Below are positions 11,285 to 55,886 of a stretch of 64,000 bases of DNA, piece after piece. Location: positions 124,001 through 188,000 of the IMG/VR virus record IMGVR_UViG_3300027759_000046, one strand, 5' to 3'. The position numbers and the translations under genes are program-made. Position 1 is the stretch's first letter. Each line of letters starts with the position of its first letter. The notes under the pieces are model-generated. The model saw nothing but the letters and a program-made list of their open reading frames with translations. It was not told the origin of the DNA and ran no database searches.

Positions 11285-11333
11285 CTAGATAAACTTATTT
11301 AGAGTTATTTATCAGAAGGTATGAAGGAGATAG

Positions 11334-11407
11334 TGGACCATTCAGGGCTCGAACCTGAGACCTTCGCATTATGAGTGCGCTGCTCTAACCAACTGAGCTA
11401 AAGGTCC
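11334..11407 (-). tRNA. tRNA-Ile2(CAT) (or Met)
   Basis: GGACCTT TAGCTCAGTTGGTTAGAGC; loop CTCATAA; body resembles lysidine-type Ile2. Confidence 0.85.
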
Positions 11408-11408
11408 T

Positions 11409-11493
11409 TGGTGGGAGTAGGTGGACTCGAACCACCGAACTCAGAAGAGGAGGGATTTACAGTCCCTTGCAATTGCCGCTATGCGATACTCCC
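11409..11493 (-). tRNA. tRNA-Tyr(GTA)
   Basis: AGGGA CTGTAAA TCCCT; long variable arm; CCA encoded. Confidence 0.95.
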
Positions 11494-11503
11494 AAATTAA
11501 AAT

Positions 11504-11578
11504 TGGCTGGGCGTCCAGGATTCGAACCTGGGACCGCTCGATTAACAGTCGAGAGCTCTACCGCTGAGCTAACACCCA
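11504..11578 (-). tRNA. tRNA-Asn(GTT)
   Basis: CTCGA CTGTTAA TCGAG; CCA encoded. Confidence 0.95.
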
Positions 11579-11585
11579 ATAAAAT

Positions 11586-11685
11586 AAAAGAACCTCGACC
11601 ACCATTTCAGCGCAAGCGCGTGCTTTCAACCTGGCATGAACGTTACGTCCAGATTGGTGGAGTCAGCCTCTACTAAGGTTCTTTT
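11586..11685 (-). ncRNA. Structured inter-tRNA RNA (10-bp closing stem, three-way junction)
   Basis: AAAAGAACCT/AGGTTCTTTT, CCACCA/TGGTGG, ATCTGG/CCAGGT. Confidence 0.5.
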
Positions 11686-11686
11686 G

Positions 11687-11760
11687 TCGGGGTGGCAGGA
11701 TTCGAACCTACGACCTCCACATCCCAAATGTGGCGCGATACCTGGCTACGCTACACCCCG
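11687..11760 (-). tRNA. tRNA-Pro(TGG)
   Basis: CCACA TTTGGGA TGTGG. Confidence 0.95.
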
Positions 11761-11765
11761 AAATT

Positions 11766-11841
11766 TGATACGCTTTCGCCACCTGTATGACGTATCACCG
11801 ATGCTTAAGGTCAGCCTTAACCATTAAGGGAGCCACAGGTT
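11766..11841 (-). ncRNA. Structured inter-tRNA RNA, possible pseudoknot, motif ATACGTCATAC
   Basis: ACCTGT/ACAGGT interleaved with GATACG/CGTATC; shares an 11-mer with 12242-12312. Confidence 0.5.
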
Positions 11842-11842
11842 G

Positions 11843-11915
11843 AGCGGATGGCGAGAATCGAACTCGCATCTCCAGCTTGGAAGGCTGGAGTAATAAGCCA
11901 TTATACGACATCCGC
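11843..11915 (-). tRNA. tRNA-Gly(TCC)
   Basis: CCAGC CTTCCAA GCTGG. Confidence 0.95.
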
Positions 11916-11919
11916 TTAT

Positions 11920-11995
11920 TGGAGCGGGAGACCGGGTTCGAACCGGCGACCTCAACCTTGGCAAGGTTGCGCTCTACCAACTGAGCTACTCCCGC
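11920..11995 (-). tRNA. tRNA-Gly(GCC)
   Basis: CAACC TTGCCAA GGTTG; CCA encoded. Confidence 0.95.
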
Positions 11996-11997
11996 AA

Positions 11998-12162
11998 GTG
12001 GGTGGGATCAGACGCGTTCTGCCCACCGGGACCTCGTCGTTAGCTTTCGCCAGAGCGTACCGAGACACTATCTAAATTTGACTTGAGGTAGTCACGGCCG
12101 CCTCTGATCCTCTCAAGTCTATTTCGTATCGTGGCAAAATGCGGCTCGACCCTGATACGCTG
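11998..12162 (-). ncRNA. Multi-hairpin inter-tRNA RNA
   Basis: CGTATC/GATACG, GACTTGAG/CTCAAGTC, TGGC-GAAA-GCTA, GGTGGG/CCCACC. Confidence 0.45.
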
Positions 12163-12164
12163 TG

Positions 12165-12237
12165 AGCCTCCTGCCGGGATCGAACCAGCGACCTACTGAT
12201 TACAAATCAGTTGCTCTACCATCTGAGCTAAGGAGGC
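12165..12237 (-). tRNA. tRNA-Thr(TGT)
   Basis: ACTGA TTTGTAA TCAGT. Confidence 0.95.
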
Positions 12238-12241
12238 AATT

Positions 12242-12312
12242 AAAATAGAGTATGACGTATGCCGAGTTATGGTGTTAGTGTGTCACCTCACTCAAACGGT
12301 TCTCTCTACTTT
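12242..12312 (-). ncRNA. Hairpin RNA with ATACGTCATAC internal loop
   Basis: AAAGTAGAG/CTCTATTTT, CCG/CGG, GAGT/ACTC, GGTG/CACC. Confidence 0.5.
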
Positions 12313-12313
12313 G

Positions 12314-12387
12314 TGGAGAATAACGGATTCGAACCGTTGACCCCCTGCGTGCAAGGCAGGTGCTCTAGCCAGCTGAGCTAATTCCCC
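12314..12387 (-). tRNA. tRNA-Ala(TGC)
   Basis: CCTGC CTTGCAC GCAGG; G3-U70. Confidence 0.95.
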
Positions 12388-12390
12388 ATT

Positions 12391-12532
12391 TAAGAACAAC
12401 TTTGGAGTACCCGTCTCGCTCCAATCTTAACAGCTTCATCAGAGTTTTCTCTGGGCCCAGGCTGAGGGTGGTGAACTCTTGATCCGACCGTGATTGTCGA
12501 CATCACATTGGCCGGAGAGACAGTTGTTCTTA
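12391..12532 (-). ncRNA. Multibranch structured RNA with 11-bp closing stem
   Basis: TAAGAACAACT/AGTTGTTCTTA; inner GTGAT/ATCAC, AGAGTT/AACTCT, TTGGAG/CTCCAA. Confidence 0.55.
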
Positions 12533-12533
12533 G

Positions 12534-12605
12534 TAGCCCGTACGAGAATCGAACTCGTATTTCACCCGTGAAAGGGGCGTGTCCTAACCGTTAGACGAAC
12601 GGGCC
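12534..12605 (-). tRNA. tRNA-Glu(TTC)
   Basis: CGCCC CTTTCAC GGGTG. Confidence 0.95.
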
Positions 12606-12609
12606 AAAT

Positions 12610-12735
12610 AAAACCATAACAACTACTCTTATCCCTACTGTTATTCACAAGCCCTAATTTGTGTCAGGAGATTCGAACTCCATCCCTAGTTGTCAAGTAC
12701 ATCTTTAGAGCATTTGATGCTTCCTCTATGGCTTT
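12610..12735 (-). ncRNA. T-arm-containing structured RNA
   Basis: Ends pair (AAAGCCATA/TATGGTTTT); GACAACTA/TAGTTGTT encloses GGAG TTCGAAT CTCC and CACAA/TTGTG. Confidence 0.55.
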
Positions 12736-12736
12736 G

Positions 12737-12808
12737 CGGTCCCACCGGGAATCGAACCCGGCACTTCGCCGTGACAGGGCGATATTATAGCCGATTAACT
12801 ACAGGACC
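12737..12808 (-). tRNA. tRNA-Asp(GTC)
   Basis: TCGCC CTGTCAC GGCGA. Confidence 0.95.
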
Positions 12809-12811
12809 GTT

Positions 12812-12915
12812 TCTCTCCAGTTCACTCCTACCCTGTGGGTATACCGTGACGGGTTGTTTATCCATGCAAATCTACCTGAAGAGCAATTTGGTTTGCGCTC
12901 GACGTGCATGGATCC
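12812..12915 (-). ncRNA. Hairpin-rich spacer RNA
   Basis: ATCCATGCA/TGCATGGAT 9-bp stem enclosing GAGC/GCTC; TACCC-ACA-GGGTA. Confidence 0.4.
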
Positions 12916-12917
12916 GG

Positions 12918-13025
12918 GTGATTAGAGCCGGACTCGAACCGGATACCGTGCTGGACGGAATAGACAACCTTACCTCTTTCGAGTTGGGGACTCGGGCACC
13001 ATCCCTCATTACGCCCATCTAATCA
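12918..13025 (-). ncRNA. 108-nt tRNA-shaped RNA with non-canonical anticodon region
   Basis: TGATTAGA/TCTAATCA acceptor, GGGCG/TGCCC D-like arm, CCGG TTCGAGT CCGG T arm, CCGT/ACGG variable hairpin, ~20 extra nt. Confidence 0.6.
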
Positions 13026-13026
13026 T

Positions 13027-13104
13027 TGGTAGCGGGGGCCGGATTCGAACCGGCGATCTCTAGGTTATGAGCCTAGCGGGCTGACCAACTGCCACCACCC
13101 CGCG
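13027..13104 (-). tRNA. tRNA-fMet-like (CAT)
   Basis: CGCGGGG...CCCCGCT-A-CCA with unpaired C1:U72; CTAGG CTCATAA CCTAG. Confidence 0.9.
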
Positions 13105-13117
13105 ATATATTTTTGCG

Positions 13118-13188
13118 TTGTCCCGCAAGGATTCGAACCTCGATTCTCTGGACCAAAACCAGATGTGCTGCCATTACACCACAGGACA
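13118..13188 (-). tRNA. tRNA-Gln(TTG)
   Basis: TCTGG TTTTGGT CCAGA. Confidence 0.95.
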
Positions 13189-13200
13189 ATTTAGTATTTC

Positions 13201-13217
13201 CAACATGTCAAAGAACC
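13201..13217 (-). promoter_or_regulatory. boxA-like antitermination site GGTTCTTTGACATGTTG
   Basis: Resembles rRNA-operon boxA (E. coli TGCTCTTTAACA; GTTCTTTGACA form in other phyla); lies inside the tRNA array in sense orientation. Confidence 0.5.
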
Positions 13218-13259
13218 TAACTCTCTAAGTATAGACTAATATACTATAGTTTAGAGCTT

Positions 13260-13333
13260 TGGCACGAGTGGAGAGATTCGAACTCCCATCAACGGTTTTG
13301 GAGACCGGCATGCTACCATTGCACCACACACGT
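13260..13333 (-). tRNA. tRNA-Trp(CCA)
   Basis: CCGGT CTCCAAA ACCGT; CCA end encoded. Confidence 0.9.
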
Positions 13334-13341
13334 GTATTTTT

Positions 13342-13419
13342 TGGTTGCGGGACCCGGACTCGAACCGGGAACTTCAGCTTATGAGACTGACGAGATGACC
13401 ACTTTCTACGCATCCCGCA
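13342..13419 (-). tRNA. tRNA-Met(CAT)
   Basis: TGCGGGA/TCCCGCA fully paired; TCAGT CTCATAA GCTGA; CCA encoded. Confidence 0.9.
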
Positions 13420-13424
13420 ATGTT

Positions 13425-13501
13425 TGGTTGGAATAATAGGACTCGAACCTATAACCTTTCGCGTATCAGGCGAGCGCTCTAACCAATTGAGCTATATTCC
13501 A
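13425..13501 (-). tRNA. tRNA-Ile(GAT)
   Basis: TCGC CTGATAC GCGA; CCA encoded. Confidence 0.9.
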
Positions 13502-13506
13502 GTATG

Positions 13507-13580
13507 TGTCCCCGACAGGACTCGAACCTGTGACTCCCTCATTAAAAGTGAGGTGCTCTAACCAACTGAGCTACGAAGAC
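13507..13580 (-). tRNA. tRNA-Lys(TTT)
   Basis: CCTCA CTTTTAA TGAGG. Confidence 0.95.
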
Positions 13581-13659
13581 ATATTGTTTTGCCTGTAACC
13601 CATATTGGTTAGCAGGTCTTTATCGTTTTCGTTTCATATCTTTATACATTTTTTTTCTG

Positions 13660-13732
13660 TGGTGAGGGGCGGGATCGAACCGCCGACACCAGGATTTTCA
13701 GTCCTGTGCTCTACCTTCTGAGCTACCTCACC
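13660..13732 (-). tRNA. tRNA-Phe(GAA)
   Basis: CAGGA CTGAAAA TCCTG; first tRNA of the array in transcription order. Confidence 0.95.
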
Positions 13733-13737
13733 CTGCT

Positions 13738-13773
13738 AAAACAAAAAACCTCGAATTTTTTAGGTTCGAGGTT
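13738..13773 (-). terminator. Intrinsic terminator immediately 5' of the tRNA array
   Basis: AACCTCGAA-N9-TTCGAGGTT followed by TTTTGTTTT, ending ~5 nt before tRNA-Phe. Confidence 0.85.
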
Positions 13774-13797
13774 CTGTGTTTCATAGTTAATATTTCC

Positions 13798-13929
13798 TTA
13801 ACTTAATCCGCTTGAACCTCGCAATACCCCAAAATCTTTAATCGTCTCCATTGCATTCACAGTAGCTGTGCCTGCCGGATACTGATTCCAGTTCTGAGAA
13901 ATTTTTGATATGTTCGCGTAGTTTTGCAC
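13798..13929 (-). CDS. Putative 43-aa leader peptide (MQNYANISKISQNWNQYPAGTATVNAMETIKDFGVLRGSSGLS)
   Basis: GTG start after A-rich AAAAAACTTAAAAC; its 3' codons contain CGAGGTTC (13814-13821), complementary to the terminator 5' arm. Confidence 0.6.
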   Translation of the reverse strand: MQNYANISKISQNWNQYPAGTATVNAMETIKDFGVLRGSSGLS

Positions 13930-13948
13930 GTTTTAAGTTTTTTGTTTA

Positions 13949-13991
13949 GTTATTTATAAATCTATTATACCAACTTTTTGAAAAAAGGTTT
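13949..13991 (-). promoter_or_regulatory. Tandem promoters for the tRNA operon: class II (AAACC-N17-TATAAT) and T4-late-like TATAAATA
   Basis: TATAAT at 13964-13969; TATAAATAAC at 13949-13958. Confidence 0.65.
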
Positions 13992-22481: not shown

Positions 22482-22523
22482 AGATATTTGTTTTTTTGTA
22501 GAGTTATTATACCACCTAGTGTA

Positions 22524-22984: not shown

Positions 22985-22994
22985 TATAAATAAC
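22985..22994 (+). promoter_or_regulatory. T4-late-like promoter TATAAATAAC for the lysis cassette
   Basis: 20 nt before the ATG at 23015; the same motif precedes many virion-type genes (7321, 11304, 34667, 39407, 42557, 45811, 49477, 49999, 51057). Confidence 0.7.
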
Positions 22995-36694: not shown

Positions 36695-36716
36695 TAAGTT
36701 GATTTGTTTATTTTAT

Positions 36717-36944
36717 TTATAGGGGCTCAACTACCTCACCATTAACTAGAAATCCCTTAACATCTGGAGTTGTCTCAAGAACTCGGTTAATGTAGGCTTG
36801 TGGATTCTTGATGTTTGTGTACACAATGTTTGAGCCATTCGCGGTGATCACCGTTACCTCCGATCCGCCTGGTGTCAGACTTAGTTGATTGACTCTGAAT
36901 TCTGGTTTTACTCGTATTTCGTTTAAGTTATTATGCTGTTCCAT
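36717..36944 (-). CDS. Hypothetical protein
   Basis: 75-aa ORF. Confidence 0.7.
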   Translation of the reverse strand: MEQHNNLNEIRVKPEFRVNQLSLTPGGSEVTVITANGSNIVYTNIKNPQAYINRVLETTPDVKGFLVNGEVVEPL

Positions 36945-47565: not shown

Positions 47566-47609
47566 GGTAAGTCTATTATACCAAATATTGGGGAAAAGGT
47601 TATTGCAGA

Positions 47610-49879: not shown

Positions 49880-50013
49880 ACGGTGACCCCCTCGGCCTCG
49901 CCGGAAACTCTGGACTCCAGGGTCTCGCGGGGCCGGGGATGCCGAGACTATAGGGACTGGACGGGACATGGGGATCCGCGGAGTCTCGGCAGACCGGGTA
50001 TAAATAAGTCTAT

Positions 50014-55469: not shown

Positions 55470-55537
55470 GCTAATATACAACAAAACTTTTAAATAAAAA
55501 AACTTTTGATGAATTATTTTCAGAAAAGTTATTAACA
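55470..55537 (-). promoter_or_regulatory. Early promoter cassette
   Basis: TGTATATTAGC element with box at 58 bp. Confidence 0.8.
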
Positions 55538-55589
55538 AAAAAGGGAGCCACATGGACTCCCGATCTTGTCAATAAACCAATTTTACCAA

Positions 55590-55886
55590 TTATACCAAAT
55601 GTAGTATCTCAGCTAGAGCGCGATCAGTTACTCGTCGGCTCATACCTCCAATATGCCATTCAATAGTTTCTTCTTTCGAGATGCGACGGTATTCTTTCCA
55701 GTCGTAGATGGTAAATACATCTCCTTCTTCCGTTTCGCAAATCCATTCGAAATTTACTTTATCTTCTCCAGTATTATCTTCAATCGTGGGTTCTCCAAGG
55801 ATTGCGATAAGGTCATTCACTGAACACTTTAATACTGTATCGTGGAACGAGGTTCCGCCTGCACGCTTTTCGGTTTTTCTAGCCAT
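55590..55886 (-). CDS. Early hypothetical protein
   Basis: DKVNFEW...FTIYDWK...WHIGG; promoter TGTATATTAGC at 55913-55923. Confidence 0.75.
   Translation of the reverse strand: MARKTEKRAGGTSFHDTVLKCSVNDLIAILGEPTIEDNTGEDKVNFEWICETEEGDVFTIYDWKEYRRISKEETIEWHIGGMSRRVTDRALAEILHLV

Follow-up and report, generated by a model that had tools for sequence, protein, structure and literature searches.

What controls transcription of the tRNA genes that large phages often carry in arrays? The locus investigated here raises this question because a small open reading frame and a transcription stop signal lie just ahead of an array of 17 tRNA genes. It sits in a window of 64,000 nucleotides (positions 124,001 to 188,000 of IMG/VR record IMGVR_UViG_3300027759_000046); all positions below are those of the window. 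A sequence-only reading had proposed that two promoters, a 43-codon GTG-start ORF and a terminator whose 5′ arm is complementary to an 8-nt segment of the ORF form a ribosome-mediated attenuator. We first examined whether these elements are present, then whether relatives retain them, and finally which explanation fits best.

Anatomy of the leader ahead of the tRNA array

All elements were found on the minus strand, and the observation made in the sequence-only reading is confirmed except for small details. The features are as follows.

13964..13991 (minus): promoter 1, with upstream element AAACCTTT (13991-13984) and extended −10 box TGGTATAAT (13972-13964), starting directly after the stop codon of the upstream 195-aa gene (13992-13990).
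13951..13958 (minus): second promoter-like box TATAAATA, the T4 late-promoter consensus, or alternatively the initial transcribed region of promoter 1.
13914..13939 (minus): 5′ UTR, start codon and first codons, in the window's clade a candidate "region 1" (anti-antiterminator) that pairs with the 3′ end of the ORF, including the antiterminator arm.
13798..13929 (minus): leader ORF of 43 codons, from GTG at 13929 to TAA at 13800-13798.
13814..13821 (minus): predicted antiterminator 5′ arm CGAGGTTC, ending 13 nt before the stop codon.
13785..13803 (minus): small hairpin AGTTAA / TTAACT that contains the stop codon and sits in the loop of the antiterminator.
13767..13774 (minus): predicted antiterminator 3′ arm GAACCTCG, overlapping the 5′ arm of the terminator, so that the two helices are mutually exclusive.
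13738..13773 (minus): intrinsic terminator with 9-bp stem AACCTCGAA (13773-13765) / TTCGAGGTT (13755-13747), 9-nt loop CCTAAAAAA and T-tract TTTTGTTTT (13746-13738).
11333..13732 (minus): 17 co-oriented tRNA genes beginning with tRNA-Phe (13732-13659), 5 nt after the T-tract, with structured spacers between some of them.

The 8-nt segment CGAGGTTC occupies codons 37-39 and not 37-40 as had been stated, and the first G of GAACCTCG flanks the 9-bp stem. The amino acid counts given before (Asn ×5, Gln ×3, Trp ×1) are correct. A simple sigma-70 scan listed neither promoter box because the −35 is poor, and it missed the hairpin on the minus strand only because its loop limit is 8; folding showed the hairpin clearly. 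TGGTATAAT recurs four times on the same strand, three of them in intergenic DNA directly upstream of a gene or the leader, and the same motif pair recurs upstream of other genes in the window. All four copies of TATAAATA in the window are intergenic, co-oriented and 8-25 nt upstream of a start codon, although the count does not exceed chance. The leader ORF lacks a Shine-Dalgarno sequence, but this is uninformative because 41 of 45 genes of this phage lack one as well. The 5 nt between terminator and tRNA-Phe leave no room for a promoter. Within the array, the scan found no minus-strand terminator and only one promoter-like match, located inside tRNA-Trp, and inspection of the spacers showed no hairpin plus U-tract; one TATAAA in the Phe-Lys spacer is not conserved.

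Conservation of the ORF and of the alternative pairing

We next searched for relatives. Among catalogued phages, megablast found none, and sensitive blastn matched only the tRNA-Phe. Metagenomic relatives, from phage contigs of about 250-270 kb and metagenomes, gave 14 distinct full-length versions of the promoter-ORF-terminator module (individual variants are designated L followed by a number). tRNA-Phe follows the module directly in at least 10 of them, whereas upstream genes differ and DNA further upstream does not align. The promoter 1 motif pair is conserved in 12 of the 14 variants; in L039 the box reads GGGTATAAT, and L030 has other DNA there. The second box is kept in all variants but L043, which reads TATAAATAAT, and the 9 nt ATAAATAAC are invariant in the 10 close variants. 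The 27-nt hairpin core is identical in 13 of 14 variants, with L036 differing at two loop bases.

The ORF is intact in 14 of 14 variants, with 41-46 codons, an ATG or GTG start and a TAA or TGA stop. Both indels among the 10 close variants are in frame, and when the observed variable columns were placed at random, all ORFs stayed intact in 0.23% of trials. The conserved peptide blocks are Q12-T21 (QNWNQYPAGT), I30-G34 (IKDFG) and R37-G38. Residues N13, W14, P18, G20, D32, F33 and G38 are invariant, and N13, P18 and G20 change only at synonymous sites. A profile search found homologues of 41-46 aa down to about 50% identity; of the four whose contigs were retrieved, three sit before tRNA-Phe, and the fourth contig ends about 25 nt into a tRNA-Phe-like sequence. 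Pfam, PHROGs and the ESM Atlas gave no usable relative of the peptide, and AlphaFold predicted no confident fold (pLDDT 53, pTM 0.12). Searches of bacterial and archaeal genomes returned no relative of the peptide and no copy of the hairpin, giving no host clue and no host-derived origin.

Loss of the complementarity in relatives had been named in advance as an outcome that would refute the attenuator, and we therefore examined it across the variants. An 8-11 nt perfect complement to the 5′ arm of the terminator is present in 14 of 14, always ending 12-13 nt before the stop codon although the last 4-5 residues vary freely. In the window alone, a perfect complement of at least 8 nt anywhere in the shuffled ORF arises in about 1% of shuffles. 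An arm C / flank G pair becomes arm U / flank A in L024 and in L042, which lie in separate parts of a tree built without those columns. L038 loses the first pair and, like L017, has a ninth (A-U) pair; L028 and L033 extend to 10-11 nt; and L039 keeps 9 nt in a shifted register (shuffle P 0.0025). However, a fixed-register covariation count was not better than shuffles; five of the nine tested pairs never vary and hence say nothing either way. In addition, the arm encodes the conserved Arg-Gly, so part of its conservation may be due to the protein. One relative (L049) has lost the ORF and the arm but keeps the terminator. Hairpins with the same inner stem and loop were also found in or next to tRNA arrays in two unrelated phage contigs, one in which the ORF is unrelated (L052) and one for which the comparison does not extend to the upstream DNA (L055), and the hairpin may therefore have another role. 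Three other 17-mer hits (L051, L053 and L054) have no matching hairpin, two of them lying in what looks like coding sequence, and were discarded.

Folding was used next to provide information regarding the two states. The whole leader folds far better than shuffles (z = −6.3), and RNAalifold places the antiterminator pairing in the consensus structure. In RNA truncated before the 3′ arm of the terminator, the antiterminator helix formed 8/8 in 10 of 10 variants tested, and in full-length RNA the two states differ by 0.2-5.7 kcal/mol, which predicts bistability. With a ribosome mask at the stop codon, terminator probability was 0.79-0.96 in 14 of 14 variants. With the A-site at codon 5, antiterminator probability was 0.86-1.0 in 12 of 14, the other two being near even. 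The 13-nt spacing means that a ribosome with the stop codon in its A-site covers only the last 1-2 nt of the arm; masking at that position rests on a steric argument. The predicted default state of naked RNA differs between variants, being the terminator in the window's clade and the antiterminator in others. The candidate region 1 pairing is supported by the MFE structure, by cognate versus non-cognate duplex energies, and by masking of the region, which flipped the ensemble in the window from terminator (0.92) to antiterminator (0.99), but support across clades is uneven. In the small hairpin around the stop codon, one sequence has a change on both sides (A-U to G-C), but this element is poorly alignable in distant relatives. 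The central long hairpin, in which the conserved blocks pair with each other, showed no compensatory change, and its outer pairs break in distant relatives; we attribute the block conservation mainly to the peptide.

We also looked for the signal that might be sensed. There is no run of codons for one amino acid, which is the hallmark of classical leader peptides and whose absence speaks against the attenuator. The share of codons decodable by the phage's own tRNAs, 32 of 42 (76%), is not above the genome background of 68% (P = 0.18), and the figure of 15 of 15 in the conserved blocks is post hoc and fails in distant relatives (Val in L038 and L042). Phe-specific sensing was rejected since the single Phe codon (F33) sits where a stalled ribosome would cover the arm rather than free it. 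Rfam at gathering threshold found only tRNAs. At E values up to 10, only sub-threshold matches to the terminator hairpin appeared, such as Thr_leader at 25 bits against a cut-off of 55, and no T-box or riboswitch was hit; these readings were rejected.

A proposed ribosome-dependent attenuator and its rivals

The explanation we favor, with moderate confidence, is a ribosome-dependent transcription attenuator at the head of the tRNA array. In this model, transcription starts at the conserved promoter pair and first produces a leader of about 215 nt that carries a translated 43-codon ORF. Near the 3′ end of the ORF, the segment CGAGGUUC can pair with GAACCUCG, which is also the 5′ arm of the terminator. 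If the leading ribosome has reached the last codons or the stop codon when RNA polymerase makes the terminator, the arm would be occluded or sterically unavailable, the terminator would form, and the tRNA genes would not be transcribed. If the ribosome lags or is held early in the ORF, the arm would pair first and polymerase would read through into the 17 tRNA genes. Our analysis establishes the anatomy, its conservation, the compensatory changes, the maintenance of the ORF and the thermodynamic bistability. That the ORF is translated in vivo, that read-through depends on ribosome position, the direction of control, the signal sensed, any stalling by the peptide, and the dependence of the whole array on this site are inferred from sequence alone, the last only because no convincing internal promoter or terminator was detected by the scan and inspection of the gaps. 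The interpretation in the sequence-only reading is thus partly supported: the geometry passed its comparative test and the modelled direction agrees, but the idea of a general translation-stress sensor is not established. That reading did not foresee the conservation of the peptide at the amino acid level, which a pure sensor does not need and which points to a specific nascent-peptide or trans function rather than a featureless sensor. The conserved motif suggests that the nascent chain or specific codons set the pace of the ribosome, and it may also mean that the peptide has a second role in trans.

Peptide conservation with synonymous codon variation, homologues down to about 50% identity and the absence of a regulatory codon run also fit a stand-alone, immediate-early microprotein gene with its own promoter and an ordinary terminator, which we consider possible but rather unlikely. 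In this view the tRNA array would be transcribed by passive leakage or by a phage- or host-factor-dependent antitermination step that provides temporal control, and the complement would be a by-product of coding Arg-Gly-Ser or only tune mRNA stability. The terminator hairpin, loop included, is more conserved than expected for a generic terminator, and its occurrence in the L052 and L055 contigs would fit a factor-binding or processing site; the retention of the terminator without the ORF in L049 is also consistent with this rival. Terminators ahead of T4 tRNA subclusters with delayed-early read-through have reportedly been described (Goldfarb & Daniel, 1980; Broida & Abelson, 1985). In contrast, the complement is retained through amino acid changes (Ser to Leu in L024 and L042; RGS to QGSS with a register shift in L039) and through changes in the non-coding flank, the ORF module travels with the tRNA array and not with the upstream genes, no family relative or confident fold of the peptide was found, and truncated transcripts fold into the antiterminator in all 10 variants tested.

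Less likely still is that the transcript acts mainly as a structured non-coding or dual-function RNA, either an sRNA released by termination or an RNA switch sensing a ligand, protein or tRNA, with the ORF incidental or secondary. The strong folding, the long invariant nucleotide blocks, the flat variability across codon positions (15/16/19) and a promoter-plus-terminator layout typical of sRNA genes are in its favor, and in Sinorhizobium the trp attenuator RNA and its leader peptide both act in trans (PMC7968998; PMC7298713). It is opposed by the Rfam results, by the lack of compensatory change in the central hairpin, and by ORF maintenance, the ATG/GTG alternation, in-frame indels and synonymous-only change at invariant residues, which point to translation. 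A chance match frozen in closely related genomes appears very unlikely. A 1% chance is not negligible in a 64-kb scan, the core pairs never vary, and conservation among relatives that are related to each other proves little on its own, but coordinated changes in two separate clades, a re-registered 9-nt complement in the most divergent member and the constant arm-to-stop distance despite variable C-terminal residues argue against it.

Relation to other leaders and possible role

The leader-peptide attenuators of amino acid biosynthetic operons (trp, his, pheA, leu, thr, ilv; Yanofsky model; pheL in PMC3082878) share with this locus a promoter-proximal short ORF, mutually exclusive antiterminator and terminator hairpins, an arm of the switch inside or next to the ORF and a U-tract directly before the regulated genes, and in the window's clade there is also a possible region-1:2 pairing that makes naked RNA terminate. 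The phage leader differs in lacking a run of regulatory codons, in its long ORF with a conserved peptide sequence, in an antiterminator arm that lies upstream of the stop codon inside the ORF rather than downstream of it, and in that the regulated genes are tRNAs in a phage. Regulatory nascent peptides such as TnaC of the tna operon or SecM are similar in having a short upstream ORF with a conserved amino acid sequence, here with invariant Trp, Pro, Gly and Asp-Phe, and the position of the ribosome near the stop codon would decide the fate of the transcript; however, TnaC controls Rho-dependent termination and not an intrinsic terminator, and no sequence similarity was found. The mgtL and mgtP leaders of mgtA and mgtCBR in Salmonella (PMC3641672) select between alternative stem-loops according to translation efficiency, thereby controlling transcription into the downstream genes, and sense the supply of charged tRNA rather than a biosynthetic end product, but they rely on proline codons and act in bacterial chromosomes on protein-coding genes, whereas here the downstream genes are the tRNAs themselves. 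The Sinorhizobium meliloti trpL attenuator, with trans-acting leader peptide peTrpL and sRNA rnTrpL (PMC7298713; PMC7968998), is a precedent for an attenuator whose peptide and terminated RNA have functions of their own, which could explain a conserved peptide; peTrpL has 14 residues and contains Trp codons for classical attenuation, with no relation to tRNA genes or phages. The phage T4 and T5 tRNA regions also have promoters, terminators and short ORFs, with tRNAs expressed by read-through, but a leader-ORF/antiterminator switch is not known to have been described there, and the window has no sequence similarity to any catalogued phage. A literature search for attenuators before tRNA genes or phage tRNA clusters, including E. 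coli pheU/pheV, returned nothing relevant within the literature searched.

A more far-reaching possibility, which we regard as speculative and unlikely on present evidence although not excluded, is that the leader is a tRNA-supply sensor with which a large phage autoregulates its own tRNA array. Pacing of the leading ribosome, which would decide whether polymerase passes the terminator, could be set by the conserved nascent peptide NWNQxPxG...DFG or by conserved rare codons. Candidate codons are AUA at codon 7 in 13 of 14 variants, and GGG at codon 34 and CCG at codon 18, which make up 4% and 15% of their codon families in this phage. The 17 tRNAs would then be switched on when host decoding capacity drops, for example after host shut-off or tRNA cleavage by defence nucleases, and switched off again once the phage tRNAs restore fast translation.

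The tRNA arrays of large phages are thought to compensate for codon usage, host shut-off or tRNA-targeting defences, but how their expression is controlled is largely unknown. The module offers a compact, portable part of about 230 nt for studying how ribosome pace is read out, and its 43-residue peptide is a candidate regulatory nascent chain. A conserved leader ORF with an antiterminator/terminator switch directly before the first tRNA would be a feedback device that couples tRNA gene transcription to translation capacity, applying the logic of the trp attenuator to the translation machinery itself.

The leader and its context

All of the features lie on the minus strand, and they are listed here in the order in which they are read from 5' to 3'.

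13992-13990 (minus): stop codon of the upstream gene, which encodes 195 aa
13991-13984 (minus): upstream promoter element AAACCTTT
13972-13964 (minus): extended -10 box TGGTATAAT
13958-13951 (minus): second promoter-like box TATAAATA
13929 to 13800-13798 (minus): ORF from GTG to TAA, 43 codons, MQNYANISKISQNWNQYPAGTATVNAMETIKDFGVLRGSSGLS
13821-13814 (minus): CGAGGTTC, the candidate antiterminator arm within the ORF, codons 37-39
13803-13785 (minus): small hairpin that encloses the stop codon
13774-13767 (minus): GAACCTCG, complementary to the arm and overlapping the 5' arm of the terminator
13773-13747 (minus): 9-bp hairpin AACCTCGAA / TTCGAGGTT with a 9-nt loop, followed by a T-tract ending at 13738
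13732-13659 (minus): tRNA-Phe, starting after 5 nt and the first of 17 co-oriented tRNA genes that run to 11333

A simple scan for promoters and terminators missed the promoters because the -35 is poor, and it missed the minus-strand terminator because the loop is 9 nt and the limit of the scan is 8. Folding shows the hairpin unambiguously, and the leader folds far better than shuffled sequences (z = -6.3). A perfect complement of at least 8 nt to the terminator arm, located anywhere in the shuffled ORF, arose in about 1% of shuffles. The observation made in the sequence-only reading is confirmed with small corrections, one being that the arm spans codons 37-39 and not 37-40 as that reading had it.

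The window is phage DNA that encodes a T4-like topoisomerase II subunit and virion proteins. It comes from a contig of about 253 kb that has no close relative among catalogued phages. Only 4 of 45 long ORFs have a Shine-Dalgarno-like sequence and upstream regions are A-rich, a clue to the mode of translation initiation of the host; the missing Shine-Dalgarno sequence before the GTG is therefore no argument against translation. The TGGTATAAT box recurs on the minus strand at 13964-13972, 22506-22514, 47575-47583 and 55589-55597 as a probable promoter, also upstream of other genes, with an AAACCTTT-like element about 20 nt upstream at three of the four sites. At 47583 the ATG of the next gene follows only 10 nt after the -10 box, which suggests a leaderless mRNA. 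At 55530-55597 (minus) the box is followed after about 30 nt by a GC-rich hairpin plus T6, forming a very small transcription unit that could be an sRNA, or a terminator abutting a promoter. The second box, TATAAATA, is the T4 late-promoter consensus and occurs four times, at 13951-13958 (minus), 22985-22992 (plus), 36714-36721 (minus) and 49999-50006 (plus). All four copies are intergenic, co-oriented with the next gene and 8-25 nt upstream of its start codon, and although their number does not exceed chance, the box may mark a second promoter class of this phage. The description of the region as carrying two promoters in the sequence-only reading is fair, with promoter activity inferred from sequence alone.

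Within the tRNA array itself, the scan found no minus-strand terminator and only one promoter-like match, inside tRNA-Trp, and inspection of the spacers showed none. Long spacers at 12809-13026, 11996-12163 and 12388-12532 (all minus) fold into stable structures (-66, -50 and -47 kcal/mol, respectively). These spacers match no Rfam family and could be degenerate tRNAs or unknown ncRNAs. Of the three tRNAs with a CAU anticodon, one starts CGCGGGG like an initiator tRNA and the last one resembles tRNA-Ile2, which reads AUA after lysidine modification (13027-13104 and 11333-11407, both minus).

Relatives of the leader and maintenance of the ORF

To find related leaders, we combined exact-pattern and peptide-pattern scans of IMG/VR and JGI metagenomes with a profile search of 1.8 billion proteins and look-ups of the encoding contigs. 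Together these searches gave 14 distinct full-length versions, namely the window plus the metagenomic relatives designated L017, L018, L023, L024, L027, L028, L030, L033, L036, L038, L039, L042 and L043. DNA upstream of the promoter does not align between lineages, whereas the promoter, the ORF and the terminator do. tRNA-Phe follows the terminator directly in at least 10 of the 14. Among the exceptions, L039 has a 213-aa ORF inserted before tRNA-Phe, L030 continues into a different tRNA, the downstream tRNA of L017 and L024 diverges from tRNA-Phe in the alignment, and the short L042 contig ends about 25 nt into a tRNA-Phe-like sequence. The leader therefore belongs to the tRNA array and not to the upstream genes. 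No copy was found in 185,579 bacterial and archaeal genomes. In some relatives, ORFs of 207-216 aa are inserted between the leader or tRNA-Phe and the next tRNA (L038:1820-2470, L039:1759-2400 and, in a further relative, L045:2026-2649), and a different neighbouring gene in L043 has a weak NUMOD3 hit; these may be mobile endonuclease genes that shuffle the array. In L043, which represents the most abundant relative lineage (P0004), the array behind the same leader contains a tRNA with anticodon UUA (2301-2376) that looks like an ochre suppressor, and the leader ORF there ends in TAA.

We next asked whether the ORF is maintained as such. In all 14 variants the frame is open for 41-46 codons, with GTG or ATG as the start and TAA or TGA as the stop, and both indels among the 10 close variants are multiples of three. 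When the 49 observed variable columns were placed at random, all ORFs stayed intact in only 0.23% of trials, and internal stops alone were avoided in 2.6% of trials. Variability is flat across codon positions (15/16/19) and pairwise pN/pS is mostly 0.3-1.0, but this flat pattern is a mosaic, since linker codons change freely whereas N13, W14, P18, G20, E28, D32, F33 and G38 are invariant. At N13, P18 and G20 the only nucleotide changes are synonymous (AAC/AAT, CCG/CCA and GGC/GGT). From this comparative evidence we infer that the ORF is very probably translated and that parts of the peptide are under selection at the amino acid level. Searches of Pfam, PHROG and Atlas returned no relative of the peptide, and structure prediction gave no confident fold (pLDDT 53).

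The antiterminator pairing and a proposed mechanism

Every variant keeps an 8-11 nt perfect complement to the 5' arm of the terminator. This complement always ends 12-13 nt before the stop codon, although the residues encoded in between vary freely (SGLS, SRQS, ECRS, CNMS, RILI). The pairing is retained by different solutions. Arm C / flank G becomes arm U / flank A in L024 and in L042, and the arm change also turns Ser into Leu. L038 loses the first pair and, like L017, has a ninth (A-U) pair, whereas L028 and L033 extend the complement to 10-11 nt. The most divergent member, L039, has lost the original register but has a 9-nt complement, AGGTTCGAG, that is shifted along the arm (shuffle P 0.0025). 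A tree built without the arm and terminator columns places L042 with L038 on a deep branch apart from the group containing L024, so the U-A state appears in two separate places. RNAalifold also puts the antiterminator into the consensus structure. A fixed-register pair count did no better than shuffles. Five of the nine tested pairs never vary, so they carry no information either way. Part of the conservation of the arm may also come from coding Arg-Gly.

Folding was used next to compare the two states. In RNA truncated just before the 3' arm of the terminator, the antiterminator formed 8/8 in 10 of 10 variants, and in full-length RNA the two states differ by 0.2-5.7 kcal/mol. When the nucleotides under a ribosome at the stop codon were made unpaired, the terminator dominated in 14 of 14 variants (0.79-0.96). 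In contrast, with the A-site at codon 5 the antiterminator dominated in 12 of 14 (0.86-1.0) and was near 0.5 in the other two. Naked RNA behaved differently in different clades. In the clade of the window, the 5' UTR and first codons pair with the 3' end of the ORF, including the arm, which would be a region 1 in the classical sense. Duplex energies of cognate against non-cognate combinations suggest that this pairing co-varies between clades, but support is uneven.

Based on these findings, we propose a ribosome-dependent attenuator. If the leading ribosome is at the last codons or the stop when polymerase makes the terminator, the arm would be unavailable and transcription would end 5 nt before tRNA-Phe. 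If the ribosome lags or is held early, the arm would pair first and polymerase would enter the array. The 13-nt spacing is a weak point of this model, since a ribosome with the stop codon in its A-site covers only the last 1-2 nt of the arm and occlusion at that position is a steric argument. The anatomy, its conservation, the compensatory changes, the maintenance of the ORF and the thermodynamic bistability are shown by the analysis, whereas promoter activity, translation in vivo, the direction of control, the signal sensed and the dependence of all 17 tRNAs on this site are inferred, the last only from the lack of a convincing internal promoter or terminator in the scan and inspection of the array. 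The interpretation as ribosome-mediated attenuation in the sequence-only reading is partly supported.

Departures from a textbook attenuator and comparison with known systems

The leader has no codon run, and its peptide is conserved. Codons read by the phage's own tRNAs are not enriched overall (32 of 42 against 68%; P = 0.18), and the 15 of 15 found in the conserved blocks is a post hoc figure. AUA at codon 7 is kept in 13 of 14 variants, and GGG and CCG are rare codons in this phage, but these are leads and nothing more. A natural deletion variant, L049 (7681-8087 of IMG/VR contig 3300042549_009448), lacks the ORF and the antiterminator arm; its promoter, with a weakened -10 box (TATTAT), runs directly into the terminator, and tRNA-Phe is truncated and lost. 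Terminator hairpins with the same inner stem and loop (CGAA-CCUAAAAAA-UUCG) but a covarying, compensated outer stem lie in or next to tRNA arrays in two unrelated phage contigs, L052 (7548-7564 of IMG/VR contig 3300017917_002877) and L055 (26-42 of 3300035670_000050). In L055 the hairpin is 43 nt before the first of 17 tRNAs. In L052 it lies in a gap inside a dispersed 19-tRNA array and follows an unrelated 32-codon ORF that has a 6-nt complement 14 nt before its stop. The hairpin may therefore have a further role, such as factor binding or processing, which keeps alive the rival explanation of a factor-controlled terminator behind a small independent gene.

In the proposed model the element works like the trp, his and pheA leader-peptide attenuators, and like the mgtL and mgtP translation-sensing leaders, although it fails one defining feature of the classical family, the regulatory codon run. 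It resembles arrest-peptide systems in having a conserved peptide, and stalling would be inferred by analogy only. The Sinorhizobium trpL case shows that leader peptides and terminated leaders can also act in trans (PMC7298713, PMC7968998). Terminators occur in the tRNA regions of phages T4 and T5. In the literature searched, we found no attenuator described before tRNA genes or phage tRNA clusters. Leader-peptide attenuation itself is established, and what differs here is the site before a phage tRNA array, the conserved peptide and the absence of a codon run. We consider the attenuator reading somewhat more likely than not, and it would be of considerable interest if confirmed.
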